Shown here: in pieces, positions 3,623 to 55,039 of the stretch | How positions within the stretch are numbered: position 1 is the stretch's first letter | How the letters are laid out: every line of letters starts with the position of its first letter | Virus record (IMG/VR): IMGVR_UViG_3300030673_000004 | Coordinates: 186,001 to 250,000 of that record | DNA: 64,000 nucleotides | Direction: 5' to 3' (one strand) | Made by a program: the position numbers and the translations under genes | The notes under the pieces: model-generated | Seen by the model: the letters and a program-made list of their open reading frames with translations, nothing else | Told to the model about the DNA's origin: nothing | Databases searched by the model: none

Positions 3623-3952
3623 ATGTATGTTGTATACGCATCACAGGTGCTAAAATCATTTAATATACCATATATTGTGGTATCCTCATTAGGTGTAGCA
3701 CTACCTAGGCATATACTGCAGTTTACTTTGAAGGATAAGCATCTTACAGGTGATGGTACCTCCTACTGGGTTTATACCGGAATTACGTCTGTCGGACATA
3801 CTATAATCTCTGTTAAGATGCAAGGTCCCATTATACACGCGGCTGTTTGGCATAGCGGCTTAGAAGTTGGCTCTGTTGAGCTGGACACTATTACCGAGCT
3901 TCCAGAATCTTTGATAAATAAAGTATCTGGTGTGCTTAATATAATATCTTGA
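3623..3952 (+). CDS. hypothetical protein
   Basis: ORF; SQVLKSFNIPYIVVS resembles the shared motif. Confidence 0.55.
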   Translation: MYVVYASQVLKSFNIPYIVVSSLGVALPRHILQFTLKDKHLTGDGTSYWVYTGITSVGHTIISVKMQGPIIHAAVWHSGLEVGSVELDTITELPESLINKVSGVLNIIS

Positions 3953-3985
3953 CATATATATATATATATATAATTAATGTATATT
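3949..3985 (+). promoter_or_regulatory. sigma70-like promoter with (TA)9 tract in the spacer
   Basis: TTGACA(3949-3954), (TA)9 (3955-3972), ATTAATG, TATATT(3980-3985); spacer 25 nt. Confidence 0.65.
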
Positions 3986-4005
3986 TGAGCTAAGGGGTAC
4001 TGCAA

Positions 4006-4623
4006 ATGTCTAACACTAACACTAACACTAACACTAACACTAATTTTGTCTCTAGCCTATTGGGTAGCGCACATGTGGCTCATATTGCAGTTGCTTCGGA
4101 ATCACAAAAGCCACGATCCTGTGTGTTTGTTGATGGCGCTACTCCTACTTTCGATTTTTCTGGCTTCTGTGATCGCGCAAAGGTTAATGCTGAGCAGGAA
4201 GCTGTAAAAGTTTTTCATGTGCAGAAAAGCTATGCTAGGTTTAATCTGACATTTGACTACAAGGGGGCGGATCATAAGGGCTTAGCCGGTGTCGTGATTT
4301 GTAGCATGGATAATGGAGAACATTTTCAAATTAGTCTTCGTCCATCCGGAAACAGCCCTTTTGAGCATCGTGTTGTAGTTGAGCACAATGCAGATCATAA
4401 AGTGTACGATGAATCTGGCAAGGTGCTTAAATGGGTAGATGAAGAAGCTGAACGTTCTCGTCAGATGACTTCTGTTGTTTTTACTGGTATTTTTGTTTCT
4501 AGCAACAATGCCGAGGACATTGGTAGTTCCGCATTCTTTAATAAGCTGTTTACTGCTGTTGCTGAGAATGCTCCATACACAGAACAGCAAGATTCTTTGA
4601 TTAAGCGTGTAAAGCGTATCTAG
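4006..4623 (+). CDS. hypothetical protein with (NT)n N-terminus
   Basis: ORF; (ACTAAC)n repeat at 4010-4044; VSSLLGSAHVAHIAVAS. Confidence 0.75.
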   Translation: MSNTNTNTNTNTNFVSSLLGSAHVAHIAVASESQKPRSCVFVDGATPTFDFSGFCDRAKVNAEQEAVKVFHVQKSYARFNLTFDYKGADHKGLAGVVICSMDNGEHFQISLRPSGNSPFEHRVVVEHNADHKVYDESGKVLKWVDEEAERSRQMTSVVFTGIFVSSNNAEDIGSSAFFNKLFTAVAENAPYTEQQDSLIKRVKRI

Positions 4624-9251: not shown

Positions 9252-9698
9252 ATGACAACATCTACATATATCTACTACAAGTCTGTTCCAGAAAATGCAG
9301 AAGGTGACTCCCGTGGTTGTCTTCTATCTGGTATGATAACTAAAGATGATACTGTTGATCTATCTGAGTTCGGCTTTACCGAATCCTGTGGAAGAGTGTA
9401 TGTAAAATTTCTACATAATTCTAATTATGTATTTGTTCCTGGATCTTATTTGTATGATGTTCTCAATTCTGTCTACTACAGATGTTTGGAACTACATTCC
9501 GCAATGACTGAAGCTGAATTTGGTTTTAATATTCCTGCGTTTGCTACTATATTAATTTGTCGTGTCCTTGGTGACTTTGAAGTACCTGAGGGTATTGTTA
9601 TCGCAGCTACTTGTGATTCTGTAGAAGCTAAGCATGTGTTTGGTTCTGATTTATCGGGTGTTAGCTTAGATAATAATTCACCCGTTGTATTGATGTGA
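9252..9698 (+). CDS. hypothetical protein
   Basis: ORF with GGAG RBS. Confidence 0.65.
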   Translation: MTTSTYIYYKSVPENAEGDSRGCLLSGMITKDDTVDLSEFGFTESCGRVYVKFLHNSNYVFVPGSYLYDVLNSVYYRCLELHSAMTEAEFGFNIPAFATILICRVLGDFEVPEGIVIAATCDSVEAKHVFGSDLSGVSLDNNSPVVLM

Positions 9699-9714
9699 CA
9701 AAAGCTAAACACCT

Positions 9715-10014
9715 ATGACTATCTATCTACATTTTGTTGCATTAAGCTGGTTGGTAGCTCTTTTTGTTAAGACGCCTATAGCTTTTCATCTATCAAAAGT
9801 AATAGGACGTGCTGTTGCTTGTCCTCTTTGCTTAGGTTGGTATCTTGGTTTTGCCCTAGGTATTGTTCATCTATGTACAGGTTTAGTTACTTTTGATTGG
9901 TATTTCCCAGCTATTTCTGCCATGGTAACTAGTGGTTCAGCTTTCAGTATACGTGTACTACTAGATATTGTAGATGCTCTACATACACGTGTGCTTCTAT
10001 GGGAATCTAAATAA
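9715..10014 (+). CDS. small membrane protein, DUF1360-like
   Basis: hydrophobic segments around CPLCLGW. Confidence 0.5.
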   Translation: MTIYLHFVALSWLVALFVKTPIAFHLSKVIGRAVACPLCLGWYLGFALGIVHLCTGLVTFDWYFPAISAMVTSGSAFSIRVLLDIVDALHTRVLLWESK

Positions 10015-10166
10015 TGAGTTGCTGTAGTGGGAAATTGCAGCCCTTGACTACAAAAGCTACTGTATGTCCCCACTGTGGAAGATACTCTACTACTCGATCT
10101 GGCACCCAAATATGTCCGAAATGTAAGAACATCTTTTTAGTTCGGACACAGGCAAGGACTGCATGA
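10014..10166 (+). CDS. 50-aa zinc-ribbon protein (absent from the ORF track)
   Basis: MSCCSG...CPHCG...CPKCK; overlaps the upstream stop and the downstream ATGA. Confidence 0.65.
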   Translation: MSCCSGKLQPLTTKATVCPHCGRYSTTRSGTQICPKCKNIFLVRTQARTA

Positions 10167-11950
10167 ATAAGATCAAAGCTACCACAGGCGTTGCTCCTGA
10201 AGATTATCACGACACCGTGTTTCAAATAATCGACGGAGAAAGGCCGAAACATAAGTATGTACAAGCAATCAAGATCTACGGGGACGACGATGTCGCAGAT
10301 ACCCCTGAGAGACGAGGCTTGGTTCAAACTCGTGTGCTTCTTGATCTTGATGATCCACAGGCAGAAGGATCTGAAGTATGTCTCTCACCAAAAGATTTGA
10401 AGCGTCCTGATATCTTTCCAACTTTGATACACGACCCAAAGATGTGGCGTGCTTCCTATGATACACCTATTCCTGAATTAGCTGTTGCTGCTTGGGATAT
10501 GGTAGAGCGTAACATATTTAATATAGCTACTGCTGGTATCGGTCAGCAGTTTAATCTAGAACGTGATGCTAATAAAGTTCTGAATGCTATTAAAGTTATG
10601 CTTAGTGGTTACTTTGGTGGATTTGTTCTTATACAATTACTTGGGTGGATTAAGAAGAAGCTGTTTGAGCGTATTCATCAACTAAATCCGCCTACTCCTG
10701 TATCTGTTGATTCTAAATTAGCCGACATTCGTATACACGGTTTGAAAGGTGTATACGATTCACGGTCATTCAATCGTTTTTATACAGGAGCTTCTTCTGA
10801 TAATCCTGACGAGTTGGCTTCTGTTAATGTATTAGATGCTTTATCCAGAACATTTCCTCATAGACCTGTAGCGTTGGTATCTATACTTCGTGACGGTAAG
10901 ATTGAGCATCAGCCTCTCTTCCGACATGACTTCGAGATGGCTAAAGACGTGTTTGTTGATTCTCAGGTAAGTATTAAGTCTGTTGTTGCTTTAGCTATAT
11001 CTATGAACATGGATAAGGCTGATGATCACGATATTAAAGTTATACTTGAGTTTTGTGCAGATAAGTCGAAGTATACTGCCTCTGTGTCTGTAGGTGGTGG
11101 CAAGATTGATGTGTCTGATGTAAAATGTGAAAAGGCAGGTACCCTGTCACCTCACCCTGTTATTGAGACTCGTGGCACTCTGCGTGATGACTTGCTATCA
11201 AATTTTATTGGTAGTATTAAATCTCATGGGTTGTTTGCTCATAAAAGTCACACTAAGTCTGCTATTCTTCCTTTCCATGTCGCTCGTAGCCTTGTAGCGC
11301 ACCTAGATACCTGTGATTTGAAGTATAAGCTGCAGACAAATTCAGCTAGTGATACGGGGATTGAGATTATGGTGCTGGACCCTGCGGGCGAGCATCCACG
11401 TCTCATCGGGTACATAACAGATAAATCTATGGGTACTCCTGAGACTTTGGATAACTTCGCACCCTCTGATAAATTCAAGTCACTGGATGTTGATTCCATA
11501 TTACAAGGTGAGTCACCTGTGATTGTCTTGGGAACTAATCCGTTGACCTCCTTCGCCGCTGCAACAAAGCGGGACGAGTATCTGAGTCAGTTTATAAAAG
11601 ATAGTTTAGAACATAACCGTAGAGTTAAATATACATCTACCATATTTGGTGTTAAGGATATATTTATTACTACGGATGTATCAACATTAAGTGAACCTTT
11701 GTCTGATCGTAAAGTTGTTGTTGATTTCCCTATAGATCTACCTAAAGGGTATGACTTTGAGAACTTCAAAACAACTGCTGTTGGTACGTTTACATCAAGA
11801 ACTCCTTCTTCTATTCAAATGGCTCTTGTCGATGGCAAGAATGTTGGCGGAACACCAACAGTAAACATTGTGTATTCCTTTAAGGGTTCCGATGTTGACT
11901 TAGCTATTGAACTTCTTTATACAGTGCTTCAGCTTTCAATCCATCAATGA
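10163..11950 (+). CDS. hypothetical protein
   Basis: 595-aa ORF. Confidence 0.75.
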   Translation: MNKIKATTGVAPEDYHDTVFQIIDGERPKHKYVQAIKIYGDDDVADTPERRGLVQTRVLLDLDDPQAEGSEVCLSPKDLKRPDIFPTLIHDPKMWRASYDTPIPELAVAAWDMVERNIFNIATAGIGQQFNLERDANKVLNAIKVMLSGYFGGFVLIQLLGWIKKKLFERIHQLNPPTPVSVDSKLADIRIHGLKGVYDSRSFNRFYTGASSDNPDELASVNVLDALSRTFPHRPVALVSILRDGKIEHQPLFRHDFEMAKDVFVDSQVSIKSVVALAISMNMDKADDHDIKVILEFCADKSKYTASVSVGGGKIDVSDVKCEKAGTLSPHPVIETRGTLRDDLLSNFIGSIKSHGLFAHKSHTKSAILPFHVARSLVAHLDTCDLKYKLQTNSASDTGIEIMVLDPAGEHPRLIGYITDKSMGTPETLDNFAPSDKFKSLDVDSILQGESPVIVLGTNPLTSFAAATKRDEYLSQFIKDSLEHNRRVKYTSTIFGVKDIFITTDVSTLSEPLSDRKVVVDFPIDLPKGYDFENFKTTAVGTFTSRTPSSIQMALVDGKNVGGTPTVNIVYSFKGSDVDLAIELLYTVLQLSIHQ

Positions 11951-48840: not shown

Positions 48841-49308
48841 ATGCATATGCCAAAATATCTGACCATCTATATAGACATGGATGATACTCTGTTTGACTTT
48901 ACAGGGGCCTACCGTCAAGCTCTAGAGGATAATCCGGCACAACCCTTTCCTCAGTCACAGATAGGATTCTTTCTGGGACTTCGACCGATCACTGGAGCGC
49001 TACAGGCTTATGACACTCTTAGAGAGCAAGGCCACCGTGTCTTGTTCTTAACTGCTCCATCTGTGCGTAATCCCATGTGCTACACAGAAAAGCGGATGAG
49101 CATAGAGCGTCACTTCGGCTTTGATGCTTGTACAGACCTAATAATTGCTCACGACAAAAGCTTGTTACGCGGGGACATTCTTGTGGATGATAAATGCGAC
49201 TCTAATAAGCAGACCGAGTTCCATGGGTATCTCCTAAACTTCGGTTCGTTGCAGTACCCAGACTGGACTAGTGTACTGCGGGGGATCTCGGGGATCGCTA
49301 ACCTGTAG
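48841..49308 (+). CDS. HAD-family 5'(3')-deoxyribonucleotidase (NT5C-like)
   Basis: IYIDMDDTL, FLTAPS, EKR, DKSLLRGDILVDD. Confidence 0.9.
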   Translation: MHMPKYLTIYIDMDDTLFDFTGAYRQALEDNPAQPFPQSQIGFFLGLRPITGALQAYDTLREQGHRVLFLTAPSVRNPMCYTEKRMSIERHFGFDACTDLIIAHDKSLLRGDILVDDKCDSNKQTEFHGYLLNFGSLQYPDWTSVLRGISGIANL

Positions 49309-49347
49309 TTCCACGTCAATGCCGGTAGGTTAGCGATGACTATTTTT
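49294..49347 (+). terminator. hairpin insulating the CRISPR locus from the upstream gene
   Basis: ATCGCTAACCT(49294-49304) and AGGTTAGCGAT(49327-49337), then a T-rich run. Confidence 0.5.
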
Positions 49348-49366
49348 GGAAATTTTTGAGTTTATC

Positions 49367-49468
49367 TTGACATTTTTGGCTTTGCTTGTATATTTCGTAA
49401 TACGAAGCAGTTGGTTAGCGAATTACCTCCTGTTCGCTCTTTGACAGTGTGTGTTTGTACCTAGTGCG
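49367..49468 (+). promoter_or_regulatory. CRISPR promoter and leader
   Basis: TTGACA(49367-49372)-N16-TATATT(49389-49394), next to the most conserved repeats. Confidence 0.7.
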
Positions 49469-50013
49469 GTAGCACTTTGTACCCATGTGTGAATTGAAAC
49501 AAGTATGACCATGCATGCCGACAGCTTGAGGCGGGTAGCACTTTGTACCCATGTGTGAATTGAAACCGAGTATACCCTCGATCCCACCCAAGCTCCTTCG
49601 TAGCACTTTGTACCCATGTGTGAATTGAAACGAGGTATTGTCTTAATAAGGCATTAGCTAATGGGTAGCACTTTGTACCCATGTGTGAATTGAAACTCGC
49701 TGACAGGCTTAACGACGTTGGATCGCCCGTAGCATTTTGTACCCATGTGTGAATTGAAACTTCTCGACAGCCGCTCCGACAATTCCTGACAAGTAGCACT
49801 TTGCATCCCTGTGTGACTTGAAACAACGCTAGGTCGTGCGAGAGGCTTTGGCCAGAGTAGCATTTTGTACCCATGTGTGAATTGAAACATGGCGGCAGAT
49901 TAGTTGGCGGAGAAATTTGGGTAGTACTTTGTACCCCTGTGTGGATTGAAACTCTTACAGTTCGCATATCTGGATTGACATCCAGGAGCTTGTACCCATG
50001 TGTGAATTGAAAC
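49469..50013 (+). CRISPR. CRISPR array, 9 repeats and 8 spacers (32-34 bp)
   Basis: repeat GTAGCACTTTGTACCCATGTGTGAATTGAAAC at 49469, 49535, 49600, 49665 (identical), 49729, 49793, 49857, 49921 (variants) and 49985 (3-nt deletion). Confidence 0.97.
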
Positions 50014-50064
50014 CTTGTACCATTGGGCAGTCGCCGTGATTTTGTATTTGACTAAAATTTAAGC

Positions 50065-50092
50065 TTGACAAACAAATTTTTTGAACTATATT
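50065..50092 (+). promoter_or_regulatory. sigma70-like promoter for the ncRNA
   Basis: TTGACA(50065-50070)-N16-TATATT(50087-50092). Confidence 0.7.
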
Positions 50093-50098
50093 TTGTTC

Positions 50099-50280
50099 TA
50101 CAAGTCGAGCACAGCGACTCTAAATCAATGCCGGGGGGTATTTCAGGTCCTCGTTAACAGTCCGAAGAAGAACTCACTGGAGGGCTTCGCTGCTAGGGTA
50201 ACCTAGCGAAACGGCTGCCAAATTCACACACAAGTCCCTGCCTAGGTGCGAAATAAAACCTAGGCAGGGATCTTTTTGTT
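50099..50280 (+). ncRNA. putative tracrRNA/scaffold RNA
   Basis: non-coding stretch between promoter and terminator; AATTCACACA(50221-50230) complements repeat TGTGTGAATT; TTTCA(50141-50145) complements repeat TGAAA; internal GCTAGG-GTAA-CCTAGC hairpin. Confidence 0.7.
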
Positions 50281-50282
50281 TT
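50235..50282 (+). terminator. intrinsic terminator of the ncRNA
   Basis: perfect 13-bp stem TCCCTGCCTAGGT/ACCTAGGCAGGGA followed by TCTTTTTGTTTT. Confidence 0.85.
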
Positions 50283-50308
50283 ACCCTATTTGAACTTGGA
50301 GATGAACG

Positions 50309-52225
50309 TTGGCTATTCGCAAAAAGACTCCAATCTTGGGCGCTGCTCCGGGTGATGTGCGAACGACTAAGTCCTATAAGTTTGAGCTGTATCCAACAAA
50401 AGATCAGAGAGACAAGTTGTTTACTTTTCTTTGGGCAACTCGGTGCATGTACAATGATGCGCTTGAATGGTTGTTTACGGATAAGATGCTGTTTGATATG
50501 GGTGACATTGACGTGTGGCTAGAGCATCGCGTACTGGCTCTTCTTAGTGATACTGAGAAGAAACAAGCTATTCTTACTTTGGAGTTGGAAGAGCTGCAAA
50601 AACGGCCAGGCACACAATGTAAACAAAATAAGATTCTGGATAGCCTAGAGAAGATGCGTGGCAAACATGATACGTTTGTTTTAGGTTTAGCAAAAATGCG
50701 CACAGAATATGAGAAAAAGATCTGGCCACGTCTCTCTAGAGAGGACATGACTGTTCTTGCTGGTGCTATTCGGCGCTTGAATAAGTCACACCCTGCTTAT
50801 GACGCAAGTTTGGGAATTCCAGCGACTACATTTAATTCGACAGTAGCCAAACGCCTTAGCCAAGCACAGAAAAGCATTTACACGTCAGATCGTCTTTCTA
50901 AGAAAGACGGCAACTTTCTTGTTTCTCGTAGACGTGAATCTACTAAAACACACATTGTTACGTACACAGATCCGGAATCTGTTCAAAAGGTAGAGAACTT
51001 CCCGAATTTCAGATCTCGTACCTCTAGCTTTATTTTAGAGGCGCAGAAACCTTCCGCATTTATCAATGGTAAACTAGGTAATCTTAAGATTACCCCTGCA
51101 CTTACTGTTCAATTTTGTGCTTATGTTGACATTCTCACGGGATCAGCCAAAGAAATTACACAGGCTATCTCAGCTAGGCGTGTTATTGGGATGTCCGTAG
51201 GTCAACAGATTACTGTAGCAGTTGATGGTACTGGGCGTTGGTGGACTAGTATTACTATTGATACCAACCATAGTCCTGTGTTGTATCCTGTTGACATTAA
51301 TAAAACTATGGCACTTGATTTTCGTCCAGCCGCTATTACAACTAGTACCGGATTCCGGATGATGCGGAGTCTTGATGCTCTTCGTTCTGTAACTAGCTAT
51401 CCTAATTGTGCCGCTCTGGCTAAGAAGTATGAAAAGAATCAAAACGCTATTGTCATGAAGCAGCGTGAGGTTTCTCGTAAGTATGAGCTGCATAAGCGAG
51501 CTAGCCAGACGTTCAAGACTACACACGTTTGTCCTATTTGTGGCGCAGTTGCCTCAGACGAAGCTGTTGCTGATCTTAACACTTTTAAGTGTTCTTGTGG
51601 GTTCTCCGTGAGGATGAAATCTAAGAATCATCGTAAAGCCAAGTTTGAGCTATCTATGTTGCATGCTCGTAGTGCTGGTATACTGACAAACTTAAGACGG
51701 CACATTGTGCATTCCTGGGTAGCATCAGAAGCAACTACATTTGTCATTCAAGATATTCCTTTGAACGAAGGTTTCAAGGCAAAGGCAAAGACAAAGAAAG
51801 ATGGGGAGAAGGACAAAGATAAGAAGCCTCGCAGATGGCGTGGCTGCGCTATCCGACGGCGCAATATCAACAGGTTCACACATCAGCTAGCTGCTGGAAC
51901 ATTGCGTAGCATGCTTGTTGCGTCTGCTGCTACTATGCAGAAGAACGTGATCGTGGTCTCTTCTGACTATGATCCTCTGCACACCTGTAGCTGCGGTCAT
52001 GTTATTTCTACTGGTGCTACAATGTGTGATGATGTTGTTGCTAATGCACCTACCCGTCTACTGTATATTCCGTTTGATCACCCAAAACTTGTTCTTGGAG
52101 CTAAGTCAGGAACGGATGCTTTACGCAGATTTGGTGAAGCATTAACTCAGAAAGAAGCCCGTAAGCAAGCTAAGTTACTGCGAAAGGCTGCGTTGACTTC
52201 TGGCCAGGGGATTGCTGTTGATTAA
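50309..52225 (+). CDS. TnpB/Cas12f-like type V effector, RuvC-II Glu replaced by Gln
   Basis: KSYKFELYPTKDQ...TRCMYNDAL (IS605 OrfB-like N-terminus); RuvC-I MALD337; SKNHRKAK..L..LH helix; RuvC-II FVIQ481D; candidate RuvC-III D574/D575; GGAGA RBS. Confidence 0.85.
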   Translation: MAIRKKTPILGAAPGDVRTTKSYKFELYPTKDQRDKLFTFLWATRCMYNDALEWLFTDKMLFDMGDIDVWLEHRVLALLSDTEKKQAILTLELEELQKRPGTQCKQNKILDSLEKMRGKHDTFVLGLAKMRTEYEKKIWPRLSREDMTVLAGAIRRLNKSHPAYDASLGIPATTFNSTVAKRLSQAQKSIYTSDRLSKKDGNFLVSRRRESTKTHIVTYTDPESVQKVENFPNFRSRTSSFILEAQKPSAFINGKLGNLKITPALTVQFCAYVDILTGSAKEITQAISARRVIGMSVGQQITVAVDGTGRWWTSITIDTNHSPVLYPVDINKTMALDFRPAAITTSTGFRMMRSLDALRSVTSYPNCAALAKKYEKNQNAIVMKQREVSRKYELHKRASQTFKTTHVCPICGAVASDEAVADLNTFKCSCGFSVRMKSKNHRKAKFELSMLHARSAGILTNLRRHIVHSWVASEATTFVIQDIPLNEGFKAKAKTKKDGEKDKDKKPRRWRGCAIRRRNINRFTHQLAAGTLRSMLVASAATMQKNVIVVSSDYDPLHTCSCGHVISTGATMCDDVVANAPTRLLYIPFDHPKLVLGAKSGTDALRRFGEALTQKEARKQAKLLRKAALTSGQGIAVD

Positions 52226-52226
52226 A

Positions 52227-54399
52227 GTGAAAAAGCTTCGCAAGTATCAGGAAGAGACACTTACGTGGGCTTTCCATGTACTGGCTAATCCGCAGCGTCC
52301 ACATTTGTTGATTGGGCAGCCACCGGGTGCAGGAAAGTCTATGCAGGCCCATTTGATTAGTCGGTTTGCTCTGGAATGTCCTAGTCTAGGGATCAAGAAA
52401 ATTCTGGTACTGACACCATTGATAGCAATCCGTTTTGGGTTTGCACGTGATCGGGACTACGGCGTAACGTATACGTCTGACTCGTTTAGCTGGCTTCAGA
52501 ACGGTGGCGTTCGGCCACTAGACTTTCAGACAACAGATGGTGCTCTTCTAGCTATGCTGCAGACAGATCGTGTGGGTGCCTATATTGCATGTCACGCATC
52601 TTTGGCTAACGCAAAAGCTGAAGATGCTCATGCTTTTGAGCAGTTGGACGACTGCTCAGATTTACTTATTGTAGTTGATGAAGCACATCACCTTAATGCT
52701 GAATAACCTGACGAGTGTCGTACAGTGTGCTGTAGATAAAGGTGCTCGAATGCTGCTACTGACAGCAACGCCGTTTGTATCTACCGGTTCGTGGGAGTTC
52801 ATCTTAAAGAATAAGACAAAGTCTCGTATACGTCCGCTTAGTCAGCATATTGAAGAAGGCTTTGCACCTCGCCTGGAAAATGAGATCATCTATAGCGATA
52901 TCTGGCCTATGGAGAACGGACTCCCTTCGCCTGAGTTTGTGGCACGTAAAACGATTGAGACGTTTTTAGCAAATGATCGAGTCAAGAGTCTTGTTGTTGT
53001 ACCTGCTACACCGTCATGCCGGGCTTGCGGTACAACGGAGGAATACGTCGATAAGATCATAGACGAGTGCTACAAACTTGTGCCACGTACAGATATTTCT
53101 TTGTTGAATACTCTGGGCGATTCTAAGACAGATATTATCACCAAAGAGTGCCGTGGTGATACCTATCACGATATTCAATTCACGCCAACCACAGGCAAAT
53201 ACCGTGAGGGTGTGGATGATCCCAGGCTAGCCTGTATTCAATACTTTGTTCGTCCGAAGTCCTCTATTCTTAGCGTTCAGATTCCGGGTAGGACTCTTCG
53301 CGAGAAACCTGAAGGATATCTGCCTGTGCAGTTTAGATTTAAGTCTAAACAGATATTCCATACTTCTTCGGCTGCTGGCGCCCTGATAGAATTTTCCTGT
53401 GATGTTCTAAAGTACATTCTCCGAACAGAGAATCCTTTAGCTGCTGCTACTCTGCCACCAATCAAAGCTATGATCGGCGAACTGCGTATGCGCAGGCGGC
53501 AAGCAGACAATTCAGGTGATATTAAATTAGCACAAAGTTATGCTGAATTTGCGGATGCCTTGGAAGATGACGCTGAAACAACTATGTGTGAGGCTCTTGC
53601 CGACTTAGATGCTCAAGTTACGCTGGCCTATGAGACTCAGCAAGGAGTAACTCTTCCTAAGCTAATTCAGCAGTATGGAATGGACTCAAACGTTGTTAAA
53701 TTGGCTATGTATCAACAGCTTAAGAATCATCCTGATAAGTTATTGGAGCACATGGAGTCTATCATTGAACGGCGTACACGAAATCACAAAGGCGGAAAGC
53801 ATAAGCCGGGAAGTACGCCGTCATTTGAGATTGCCGACTTTTACCTTCATATGCTTGCAGAGCAGTATGCTGATGAAGAAATAGATCAGTTTGTGACAAC
53901 TATTGATAGTCGCGTTTTGACCGAGTGGTCTGATCGCTGGGAGAAACTTAGAGACAGGACAGATCTGGAAAAAGCTGACGGTCTAGTTCAGGCTTTCAGC
54001 ACGGGTAGCCTTCGTCGTGACGATCATATCAACTACCCATCGTTTGAAGAGTTTCGGCTGCGTAATCTGCTCAGTACGGTGCTGCCCGCAGTTAAACGTC
54101 CCAGTTTAGAGGCTCGTGCGCTGTTAGATGCTGCTGGGTTGTCTAGTCGCATTTTTGCTGATAACTGGAATGATCCTCTTGTTTGTAACAATGGTACCTT
54201 GCTAACTCTTCAGCGTTTTGTACCTTTGGCATCTTGGGTGAAGGCGCATGGAAGGCTACCCCAGATTTCTTCTGATCTAGAAGAGAGGTCCGCCTATAAA
54301 TTCTACAGAATCTATAAGGACAAAATGACTGTAGTTGCTTCTCAGCACACTGCTAGTATCATACAGGAACTACATATAGGAGAAGTCTTGGATGCCTAA
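52227..54399 (+). CDS. SF2 (DExH, Res-like) helicase split by a frameshift at ~52704
   Basis: LRKYQ, GQPPGAGKS, VLTP and IVVDEAHH in ORF 52212-52706; LTATP, EGVDDP, QIPGRTLR and HA-like HGRLP in ORF 52675-54399. Confidence 0.85.
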
Positions 54400-55039
54400 G
54401 ACTAAGACAACGTCACCTGAGTTTGTTTATGCTTCTCATGGCAAGCAGGAATACCGCAAGTATGTTCAGGGCCAATTCGATATTCATTCTCTTGGTGATT
54501 TCCATGGTAAGTGGCTTGAGCCCATTGGGGCAGGTGCTTTAACATTTGATTCATTACTAGCAACCGGGCGTATAGATGAAGCTAGCCTGATTGGGTTAGA
54601 CAAGAACCCTAGGGATATTGCAGGATCACGTCAGAACATCGAGCAGTGCCGCACTAAATTCCCAAAAGCTCAGTTCTTCTGTCAAGATTGGCGTGAGTTC
54701 TGTCTACAGTATCGCGATCCAATTAGGTACATCGTTTACGATTTGTATACATCTACTTTTGGGCCGGAGCTTCTAAGCAATTTGCAGGCTATTTTTAGTT
54801 TAGTGCAGCAGAGCTTGAAGTACCATGGTCAAGTTCTTCTCGCTGTAACGGCAGATTTGCAGGCAACTATGCGACATAAGAAAGACGTACAAGACTTTGA
54901 GCATCTGTTGAAACGTGTATTTGAATCACCTACTATTCGGCATAGCCGAATATCCTGTAAAGACATGTTTCTATATACCAGCAATCGCGATCAGATGGGT
55001 GTTTTGATCATTGAATTCTTTAACAATACTGTTCCTTAG
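54392..55039 (+). CDS. putative class I SAM-dependent methyltransferase-fold protein
   Basis: WLEPIGAG (motif I), LIGLDKN, FFCQDW, YIVYDLY; overlaps the helicase stop. Confidence 0.6.
   Translation: MPKTKTTSPEFVYASHGKQEYRKYVQGQFDIHSLGDFHGKWLEPIGAGALTFDSLLATGRIDEASLIGLDKNPRDIAGSRQNIEQCRTKFPKAQFFCQDWREFCLQYRDPIRYIVYDLYTSTFGPELLSNLQAIFSLVQQSLKYHGQVLLAVTADLQATMRHKKDVQDFEHLLKRVFESPTIRHSRISCKDMFLYTSNRDQMGVLIIEFFNNTVP

Follow-up and report, generated by a model that had tools for sequence, protein, structure and literature searches.

The 64,000-nucleotide (nt) stretch of DNA analysed here (the window, positions 186001-250000 of the 375,537-base-pair (bp) virus record IMGVR_UViG_3300030673_000004 in IMG/VR) contains a CRISPR array, which opens a module of conserved genes. 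The record has direct terminal repeats and 100% CheckV completeness, and its source is a complete huge phage from peat. On balance, the array probably serves as the guide store of a phage-encoded type V-like CRISPR system that lacks adaptation genes of its own, depends on a trans-activating CRISPR RNA (tracrRNA) and may have obtained its spacers through the type I-C acquisition machinery of its host. The module runs in the order leader with promoter, array, tracrRNA gene with its own promoter, effector gene, superfamily 2 (SF2) helicase gene and S-adenosylmethionine (SAM) methyltransferase-like gene, and a genome-wide repeat scan showed one CRISPR-like array (49469-50013) and one effector copy in the phage. 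Its central features are as follows.

49469-50013, plus strand: CRISPR array in which eight spacers of 29-34 nt separate nine repeats of 32 nt each
50065-50092, plus strand: promoter-like site of the tracrRNA (TTGACA, 16 nt, TATATT)
50098-50282, plus strand: candidate tracrRNA, with structured scaffold, anti-repeat, terminator and T-run
about 50220-50241, plus strand: anti-repeat, with a 10-nt exact core (50221-50230) complementary to repeat positions 18-27
50236-50247 and 50258-50269, plus strand: 12-bp GC-rich terminator stem, followed by a T-run at 50271-50282
50309-52225, plus strand: TnpB/Cas12-fold effector P0001 of 638 amino acids (aa), with a TTG start behind GGAG

The type I-C ancestry of the repeats is one of the two foundations of this reading. 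When the last 15 nt of the repeat were sought as a pair at array spacing, in 185,579 species genomes and in the JGI metagenomes, the matches were the phage itself and arrays of classical hairpin repeats of the form GT(C/T)GCACCCCGCA(A/C)GGGGTGTGTGAATTGAAAC and close variants. The repeat has the 3′ end TGAATTGAAAC, and its last 15 nt are identical to those of the repeats in loci L012 and L021; the L012 array adjoins a complete type I-C operon (cas3, cas5c, cas8c, cas7 (csd2), cas4, cas1c and cas2), all genes of which score above the curated type I-C cut-offs apart from a truncated cas3. Over the whole repeat, 22-23 of 32 positions are identical between the phage and type I-C sequences, a level reached by none of 5000 shuffles; both are 32 nt long, start with GTNGCA and carry the same 11-nt 3′ overhang in full. 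Type I-C repeats consist of a 2-nt overhang, a 7-bp stem, a 5-nt loop and an 11-nt handle and are separated by 33-34-nt spacers; the 11-nt overhang becomes the 5′ handle of the CRISPR RNA (crRNA) once Cas5c has cut at the stem's base, and this cleavage is structure-dependent and requires the 7-bp stem-loop (PMC8524198). With the 3′ base of that stem set at repeat position 21, only three of the seven pairs are left in the canonical register of the phage repeat, and its hairpin energy is -2.3 kcal/mol, against -13.7 and -14.7 kcal/mol in true type I-C repeats. The number of pairs formed in the type I-C register falls from seven in the related locus L018 to six in L028, five in L014 and three in the window. 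Sequence comparison thus strongly supports descent of the phage repeats from bacterial type I-C repeats and, with equal strength, an erosion of the Cas5c hairpin, whose place as structural element appears to have been taken by a duplex with the tracrRNA. The preliminary description, made from the letters of the window alone, had proposed type I-C-like repeats with a weakened hairpin, and the repeat indeed groups with type I-C repeats and not with another family. Set beside Cas5c-processed type I-C (Dvulg) systems, the phage array is alike in repeat length, GTNGC start, 11-nt 3′ handle, spacer length (32-34 nt) and orientation of the spacer to the handle, but it differs in the eroded 7-bp stem and 5-nt loop, in the absence of type I-C cas genes and in the pairing of the repeat with a tracrRNA. 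Rfam CRISPR-DR classification was abandoned, as the window gave only sub-threshold DR2 and DR9 scores (about 17 bits) and genuine type I-C arrays went unscored altogether.

The conserved handle raises a different explanation, in which type I-C proteins of the host either use the phage transcripts as guides, in the manner of mini-arrays, or are soaked up by them as by RNA anti-CRISPRs. The 11-nt 3′ handle, which Cas5c/Cascade recognises, is identical to that of real type I-C arrays (PMC8524198), and viral mini-arrays with host-like repeats as well as repeat-mimicking Racr RNAs are known (PMC11656645; PMC7162821). Such a hijack or decoy is nevertheless very unlikely, as Cas5c needs a stem-loop of which less than half remains, the phage repeat is identical to no host repeat found, and a decoy would have no need for an effector of its own or for a tracrRNA with an anti-repeat that, across five loci, changes together with the repeat.

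The second foundation, and the one on which the dependence on a tracrRNA rests, is the RNA encoded between array and effector, which is well supported by sequence features as a real tracrRNA. The same module occurs in five related metagenomic loci, whose repeats are type I-C-like, with 5-7 of 7 stem pairs in three of them.

L014: at least 16 repeats, GTCGCAACTCGTACAGGTGTATGGATTGAAAC; homologous scaffold with a 22-nt perfect anti-repeat just before the start codon
L028: degenerate array, repeats with six of seven stem pairs; co-varying anti-repeat
L017: of the array, only the last repeat; also a scaffold, an anti-repeat and a terminator
L015/L016: one array on either side of the module, the leaders of the two being identical; tracrRNA followed by a terminator
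L018: one perfect type I-C-type repeat (3668-3699) with seven of seven stem pairs, behind a conserved leader; no array

The strongest evidence for the identity of this RNA is that anti-repeats co-vary with the repeats of their own loci. The energy of the anti-repeat with its own repeat is -46.4 kcal/mol in L014, -32.7 in L028, -22.1 in L015, -15.3 in L017 and -14.2 in the window, and in each locus the own repeat was the best partner among the five repeats tested, with the exception of L017, where the L028 repeat ties at -15.4. Within the window, the value of -14.2 kcal/mol was reached by 5 of 1000 shuffled repeats. These energies were computed with the homologous 3′ tail of the tracrRNA only; folding the whole tracrRNA against the repeat had been tried and was dropped as non-discriminating, because the GC-rich scaffold gives spurious duplexes. 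The promoter and terminator add to this, as do the fold of the 185-nt stretch at 50098-50282 (-65.3 kcal/mol, z = -4.1 against shuffles) and the scaffold, of which L014, L028, L017 and L018 have a conserved version and L015 a less conserved one. What had at first been called a tracr-like RNA is thereby borne out by its own promoter and terminator, its folding, a scaffold found in five relatives and the co-varying anti-repeats. Given this co-variation, recognition of the repeat appears to have moved from the Cas5c hairpin to an intermolecular duplex. By sequence, the module therefore has the separate anti-repeat RNA that marks the tracrRNA-dependent type V systems (V-B, V-E, V-F and the like).

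Several of the related loci deserve separate description. In L014 (1-1003), 13 of the 15 full repeats differ from one another by 1-4 bases while the anti-repeat matches the consensus perfectly, which is unusual for a growing array. In L028 (530-2357), the effector homologue is broken up into three open reading frames (ORFs) of 178, 59 and 338 aa, the helicase and methyltransferase-like genes are intact, and the module appears to be decaying. The two L015 arrays (4036-4390 and 9814-10167) flank the effector, helicase and methyltransferase-like genes, and a 104-aa ORF lies between the first array and the tracrRNA. L018 has a tracrRNA-like scaffold (1843-1950) upstream of the effector and the leader and repeat downstream of it; its RuvC residues are kept as D/E/E, and the locus resembles a primordial or empty form of such a system.

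The protein encoded behind the tracrRNA belongs to the TnpB/Cas12 fold but is far from any characterised member. P0001 passes the Pfam cut-off for the N-terminal helix-turn-helix (HTH) family HTH_OrfB_IS605 (PF12323; E = 6e-8, score 32.5 against a cut-off of 21), falls below it for PF07282 (22.7 against 26.3), gives only sub-threshold scores for the Cas12f1-like_TNB zinc ribbon and for Cas12f in PADLOC (E = 3e-7), and reaches 26.4 bits against a cut-off of 100 for the NCBIfam family guided_TnpB (NF040570). A profile of the family matched TnpB structures in the PDB, up to 1e-14, with residue-level alignments. Foldseek searches with the AlphaFold2 (AF2) model placed ISFba1 TnpB, Cas12m and Cas12f best, followed by Cas12p, ISDra2 TnpB and LaTranC (E-values of 1e-10 to 1e-7), at identities of at most 13% in the top 30 full-length matches and 15% over one partial match. 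Relatives are rare, nine having been found among 1.84 billion representative proteins; none was found in IMG/VR by protein or alignment query, and a word-index protein search with P0001 returned only the protein itself and one fragment. Cas-lambda and Cas-phi gave no match at E <= 1 in sequence or profile searches of the PDB, and Cas-lambda appeared only as a distant Foldseek match, at rank 25 and below with 9-11% identity. Both of these proteins work without a tracrRNA. A single effector of TnpB-type split RuvC fold thus stands beside a CRISPR array, an arrangement kept in L014, L015/L016, L017, L018 and L028.

The RuvC site, which the preliminary description had passed over, is non-canonical. 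Alignment to TnpB places D337, Q481 and D575 at the active-site positions, with glutamine in place of the catalytic glutamate and D482 next to it, so that the D-E-D triad is incomplete. The relatives have H/Q/D (P0003), D/Q/D, H/T/N (P0008, in which all three acidic residues are lost) and D/E/E (P0007). With Q481 in the phage and a relative that has lost every acidic residue, DNA binding without cleavage is possible, and on sequence grounds cleavage is doubtful for several family members. The C-terminal zinc ribbon of the window allele lacks its fourth cysteine. An allele from a freshwater run carries nine extra bases (TGTGATGCT) at 52024-52025, corresponding to effector residues 572-575, which restore a CxxC motif in the zinc ribbon; P0002 also has this motif. 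The nine-base difference likely arose by replication slippage, because the flanking 9-mers are near-identical.

No match to Cas1, Cas2, Cas4, Cas5c or Csd2 profiles was found at E <= 1 in the complete phage genome, while control genomes were positive; the Csd1 profile matched nothing anywhere, control genomes included. The check for cas1 or cas2 elsewhere in the genome that had been suggested earlier therefore turned up neither gene. Because the phage is without Cas1, Cas2 and Cas4, an integrase of the host is proposed as the source of the spacers, and the most economical candidate would be a type I-C adaptation module acting in trans; acquisition by host Cas1, Cas2 and Cas4 of type I-C is a proposal to which we give roughly an even chance, and the other parts of the scheme a much higher one. 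Sequence features strongly support a pre-crRNA that is transcribed from the leader promoter as repeat followed by spacer, and a separate RNA of about 180 nt that is transcribed between array and effector and whose 3′ anti-repeat pairs with the middle and 3′ part of the repeat. Under the proposed reading, the resulting duplex would be bound by the 638-aa protein and may be trimmed by a host RNase or by the effector itself, which would leave the spacer at the 3′ end of the guide. All eight full-length repeats share the eroded hairpin yet flank different spacers, which would place insertion after erosion, and since the repeat ends stayed type I-C-like while the hairpin eroded, the integrase would read mainly the ends. 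The type I-C module selects a 5′-TTC protospacer adjacent motif (PAM) and places the PAM-proximal spacer end next to the GAAAC end of the repeat; Cas12 and TnpB effectors use a 5′ T-rich PAM. This geometry would suit a Cas12-type effector. The effector may block or silence its targets instead of cutting them, possibly helped by the co-inherited helicase.

The same observations must be weighed against insertion by a phage or host enzyme that has no link with type I-C adaptation (an integrase that escaped recognition, for instance, or array-to-array recombination), the type I-C-like ends having then been kept for the effector or tracrRNA. The 3′ end of the repeat does adjoin the guide, a region contacted by the effector in TnpB- and Cas12f-type systems (textbook knowledge), the leader element is phage-specific and unlike the type I-C leaders examined, and the presence of C7T in repeats 5 and 7 and its absence from repeat 6 fit recombination as well as serial copying. 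We regard this as highly improbable, given that the conserved module holds only the effector, helicase and methyltransferase-like genes and hence no candidate integrase, that spacers of 32-35 nt combined with a 32-nt repeat follow type I-C practice in all loci, and that the extreme 5′ GTNGCA is conserved and, in the window, lies outside the 10-nt exact anti-repeat core.

The array itself bears on how spacers were added. Its repeats start at 49469, 49535, 49600, 49665, 49729, 49793, 49857, 49921 and 49982 (a period of 61-66 nt), and RNAfold on the repeat alone gives only a 4-bp GCAC/GUGU stem at -2.3 kcal/mol, in agreement with the 32-bp repeat and roughly 4-bp GCAC/GTGT stem reported earlier, now counted in nine copies. 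From the leader end onward, the repeats carry 0, 0, 0, 0, 1, 4, 1, 3 and 5 mismatches to the consensus, and the ninth, degenerate copy has lost its 5′ eight bases. Four identical leader-proximal repeats and decaying distal ones had been noted and taken as a sign of polarised and fairly recent acquisition. The array promoter lies on the side of the identical repeats, so that the polarity assumed is right; recency is unproven, the array being identical in all assemblies open to checking, among them the independent assemblies L009 and L026. Repeats 5 and 7 (window 49729-49888) both carry C7T, and repeat 6 between them has C at position 7 plus four other changes, a pattern not expected if repeats were simply copied one after another at the leader end. 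Directly after the last repeat, the stretch at 50014-50030 (CTTGTACCATTGGG) resembles repeat positions 7-19; it may be what is left of one more degenerate repeat, or else a trailing guide that has become fixed.

The spacers are non-self: against the genome of the phage, their longest match spans 14 nt and includes one mismatch (12 nt exact). This is at chance level and agrees with what had been surmised from their appearance. Their lengths are, in order, 34, 33, 33, 32, 32, 32, 32 and 29 nt, and their guanine-plus-cytosine (GC) contents 55.9, 57.6, 36.4, 59.4, 53.1, 59.4, 50.0 and 37.9%; the earlier count of six spacers at 50-59% GC, above their surroundings, is therefore correct. The whole 375-kb genome has a GC content of 42.8%. 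Pooled, the spacers reach 51.4%, a value matched by only 2.6% of 264-nt genome windows, and 19.8% of 33-nt genome windows have at least 50% GC, so that a binomial test gives P of about 0.0012 for six of eight spacers. In all three measurable loci the spacers are richer in GC than their own phage (51.4 against 42.8%, 54.1 against 48.1% and 41.6 against 30.2%, or +8.6, +6.0 and +11.4 points). Phages are usually poorer in GC than their hosts, and because of this the excess fits an origin of the spacers in DNA richer in GC than that of the phage, the likeliest sources being the chromosome of the host or mobile elements resident beside the phage. A preference for GC at acquisition or retention would yield the same pattern.

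The main rival to an array that is still supplied by the host is a fossil array, in which an ancestor captured a type I-C array or had adaptation genes, the array has since been inherited vertically without new spacers, and the module is decaying. It would account for the lack of any difference in the array between the independent assemblies and between the runs that cover it, for the frameshifted helicase described below, for the loss of a zinc-ribbon cysteine that is kept in the freshwater allele and P0002, for glutamine at the position of the catalytic glutamate, for L014, where repeats differ as if from mutation without turnover in 13 of 15 cases, and for L028 with its degenerate array and effector in three ORFs. 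We consider it unlikely, as the identity of the leader-proximal repeats and the decay of the distal ones is the signature of additions at the leader end, an eroded hairpin common to repeats that flank different spacers means that insertion continued after the erosion, and damage is absent from the tracrRNA, the two promoters, the terminator and the leader element, all of them conserved, with the effector ORF at full length.

Several results nevertheless weigh against a working system fed by the host. The phage itself shows signs of module decay (the frameshifted helicase, the zinc ribbon short of one cysteine and Q481), and the AF2 model of P0001 has only a moderate predicted local distance difference test score (pLDDT) of 68. 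RNA libraries gave no match to the crRNA or tracrRNA, the only hit being a 229-nt contig inside the effector gene. No array variant or expanded leader end was seen in any assembly or covering run checked, although contig data cannot reveal rare variants and Logan contigs break at repeats. The phage leaders resemble one another and not the two type I-C leaders examined, and no host array with the phage repeat was found in the 185,579 species genomes or JGI metagenomes. In type I-E, the palindromic arms of the repeat help the integrase to measure it; if type I-C behaves likewise, the eroded palindrome should hinder integration. Finally, no protospacer was found in the phage, 50,697 phage records, 72,556 plasmids, IMG/VR (by seeds), two metagenome-assembled genomes (MAGs) or 802 genomes. 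Among INPHARED phages the sole match was one of 23 nt, to two Fusobacterium phages (E = 0.2), PLSDB plasmids gave none, and the 22-nt seeds of spacers 1, 2, 4, 5 and 6 had no match in IMG/VR. The two MAGs, which carry similar type I-C repeats, matched in the repeats only and in no spacer, and 401 genomes sampled from each of their classes (802 in total) contained no spacer match; the spacers of the relatives, compared with the phage and with one another, showed nothing beyond 14 nt. Without a protospacer there is no PAM and no target, so that the searches proposed in the preliminary description, with the spacers for targets and a PAM and with the repeat for host arrays that would identify the host, yielded no target, PAM or host array.

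The leader contains elements conserved between loci whose effectors have diverged widely.

49295-49338, plus strand: leader inverted repeat with 10-bp arms ATCGCTAACC and GGTTAGCGAT, 24 nt apart, where an NT5C-like gene ends, upstream of the array promoter
49367-49394, plus strand: promoter-like site of the pre-crRNA (TTGACA, 16 nt, TATATT), sigma70-like at 11 of 12 consensus positions
49413-49421, plus strand: third GGTTAGCGA box, between the promoter and repeat 1, at the same position in both L015 leaders

The array and tracrRNA promoters have identical architecture. The leader stems and loop are conserved in the window, in both L015 leaders (3861-3990 and 9639-9768) and in L018 (3500-3545), which also has a near copy of the third box (GTTAGCGA); the stems are invariant, and the effectors of the loci sharing them are only about 23% identical. 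The element could serve as operator, terminator or signal for integration.

Two genes downstream of the effector travel with the module, another feature to which the preliminary description had not drawn attention.

52212-54399, plus strand: SF2 (ResIII/DEAD-like) helicase, split by a frameshift into 52212-52706 (with a DEAH motif) and 52675-54399 (with a TAT motif)
54392-55039, plus strand: 215-aa protein with the fold of class I SAM-dependent methyltransferases, product of the module's final conserved gene

The helicase is split between motifs II and III (window 52675-52706), and since independent assemblies all show the same split, faulty sequencing is an improbable cause. Among the relatives, L014, L015/L016 and L028 encode the helicase in one unbroken ORF of 705-731 aa that follows the effector directly, with 27-34% identity to the window copy (tblastn), and that of L014 has a weak match to DinG (PADLOC, E = 3e-4). 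The methyltransferase-like protein is 36-45% identical in L014, L015, L017 and L028, where it measures about 220 aa; its AF2 model has a pLDDT of 78.6, and the Foldseek matches listed were almost all SAM methyltransferases, many of them acting on RNA. In L017, this gene lies directly behind the effector and there is no helicase. Beyond these two genes, flanking genes are not common to the related loci. A more specific version of the proposed system, which we consider rather improbable, would have an RuvC-impaired, tracrRNA-guided protein mark the target and the SF2 helicase, perhaps with the methyltransferase-like protein, carry out the interference, the array being filled by host type I-C Cas1-Cas2-Cas4; it would represent an undescribed type V subtype. 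If true, this would be a single-protein analogue of Cascade-Cas3 or of type IV systems with DinG, through which a huge phage programmes attacks on its host or on rival elements without adaptation genes of its own.

Among the known systems closest to this one is Cas12r of the Thermus Lalka phages: its repeats are type I-E-like, and its authors propose that spacers are acquired through the type I-E adaptation machinery of the host (preprint 10.64898/2026.04.20.719267). Both are phage-encoded, TnpB-derived effectors with a short array, no adaptation genes and repeats that share their length and some sequence elements with host class 1 repeats. According to its description, by which and not by sequence the two were compared, Cas12r has type I-E-like repeats of 29 nt, no tracrRNA, the spacer 5′ of the repeat part and an active RuvC site, whereas the present phage has type I-C-like repeats of 32 nt, a tracrRNA, the spacer 3′ of the repeat, glutamine in RuvC-II and the helicase and methyltransferase-like genes. 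Cas12f, Cas12n, ISFba1 and ISDra2 TnpB and LaTranC share with it the fold, an HTH_OrfB-like region at the N-terminus, a zinc ribbon at the C-terminus and a long, structured scaffold (tracrRNA or omega-RNA-like) that precedes the guide, but the phage effector differs from them in its low identity, family scores below cut-off, rarity and replaced RuvC-II glutamate. With Cas12m, Cas12k and TldR it has in common the replacement of RuvC residues in a TnpB/Cas12 protein borne by a mobile element, which suggests binding or silencing; it differs in keeping D337 and D575, in having no transposon (as Cas12k does), in not being an array-less single-guide repressor (as TldR is) and in its repeats and neighbourhood. 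Type IV-A3, which is plasmid-borne and has a DinG helicase, gains spacers in trans through the type I-E Cas1-Cas2 of its host, according to work cited in PMC11656645. As with the phage system, its carrier is a mobile element, adaptation genes are missing, a helicase goes with it and interference may need no nuclease, but its class 1 effector has multiple subunits, in contrast to the single TnpB-fold protein and tracrRNA of the phage, whose type of helicase is only weakly DinG-like. Huge phages often carry arrays without Cas1, Cas2 and Cas4, sometimes with host-like repeats (PMC7162821).

Given the precedents of type IV-A3 and Cas12r, the idea of host adaptation in trans is itself not new. What appears undescribed is the effector lineage, its tracrRNA, the type I-C origin of the repeats with a series of erosion stages, the RuvC site, the helicase and methyltransferase-like partners and the leader element; a literature search found no paper describing this system, a 2022 survey of virus-encoded CRISPR systems in Cell being beyond its reach. 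In this lineage, a type V system may be seen taking shape out of a TnpB-like nuclease that has a long guide scaffold and an array taken over from class 1 (type I-C). Its relatives form a graded series, from a single canonical type I-C repeat with a near-canonical D/E/E site to full arrays with eroded hairpins and degenerate RuvC sites, which makes the order of events directly testable. After Cas12r and type I-E, it would be a second, independent case of a phage class 2 effector that may depend on host class 1 adaptation, and, if confirmed, the sharing of adaptation modules across types would amount to a general strategy among mobile elements. Practical interest attaches to the effector as well, which is small (638 aa), distant from characterised Cas12 proteins and perhaps a natural DNA binder.

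Sequence near-identical to window positions 49300-52300 was present in runs X1-X11, which comprise peat, wastewater, bioreactor and freshwater metagenomes and one mosquito-associated metatranscriptome contig of 229 nt. From its occurrence in peat, wastewater, bioreactors and freshwater, the phage or its close kin is widespread across wet habitats. No tRNA gene was found in the window, and the sigma70-type promoters and the GGAG ribosome-binding site speak weakly against a host among the Bacteroidota. About 45 kb past the end of the window, at genome positions 295006-305601, lie clusters of short direct repeats at a spacing of 45-90 nt, which are not CRISPR-like by count and are probably repeats within a gene.

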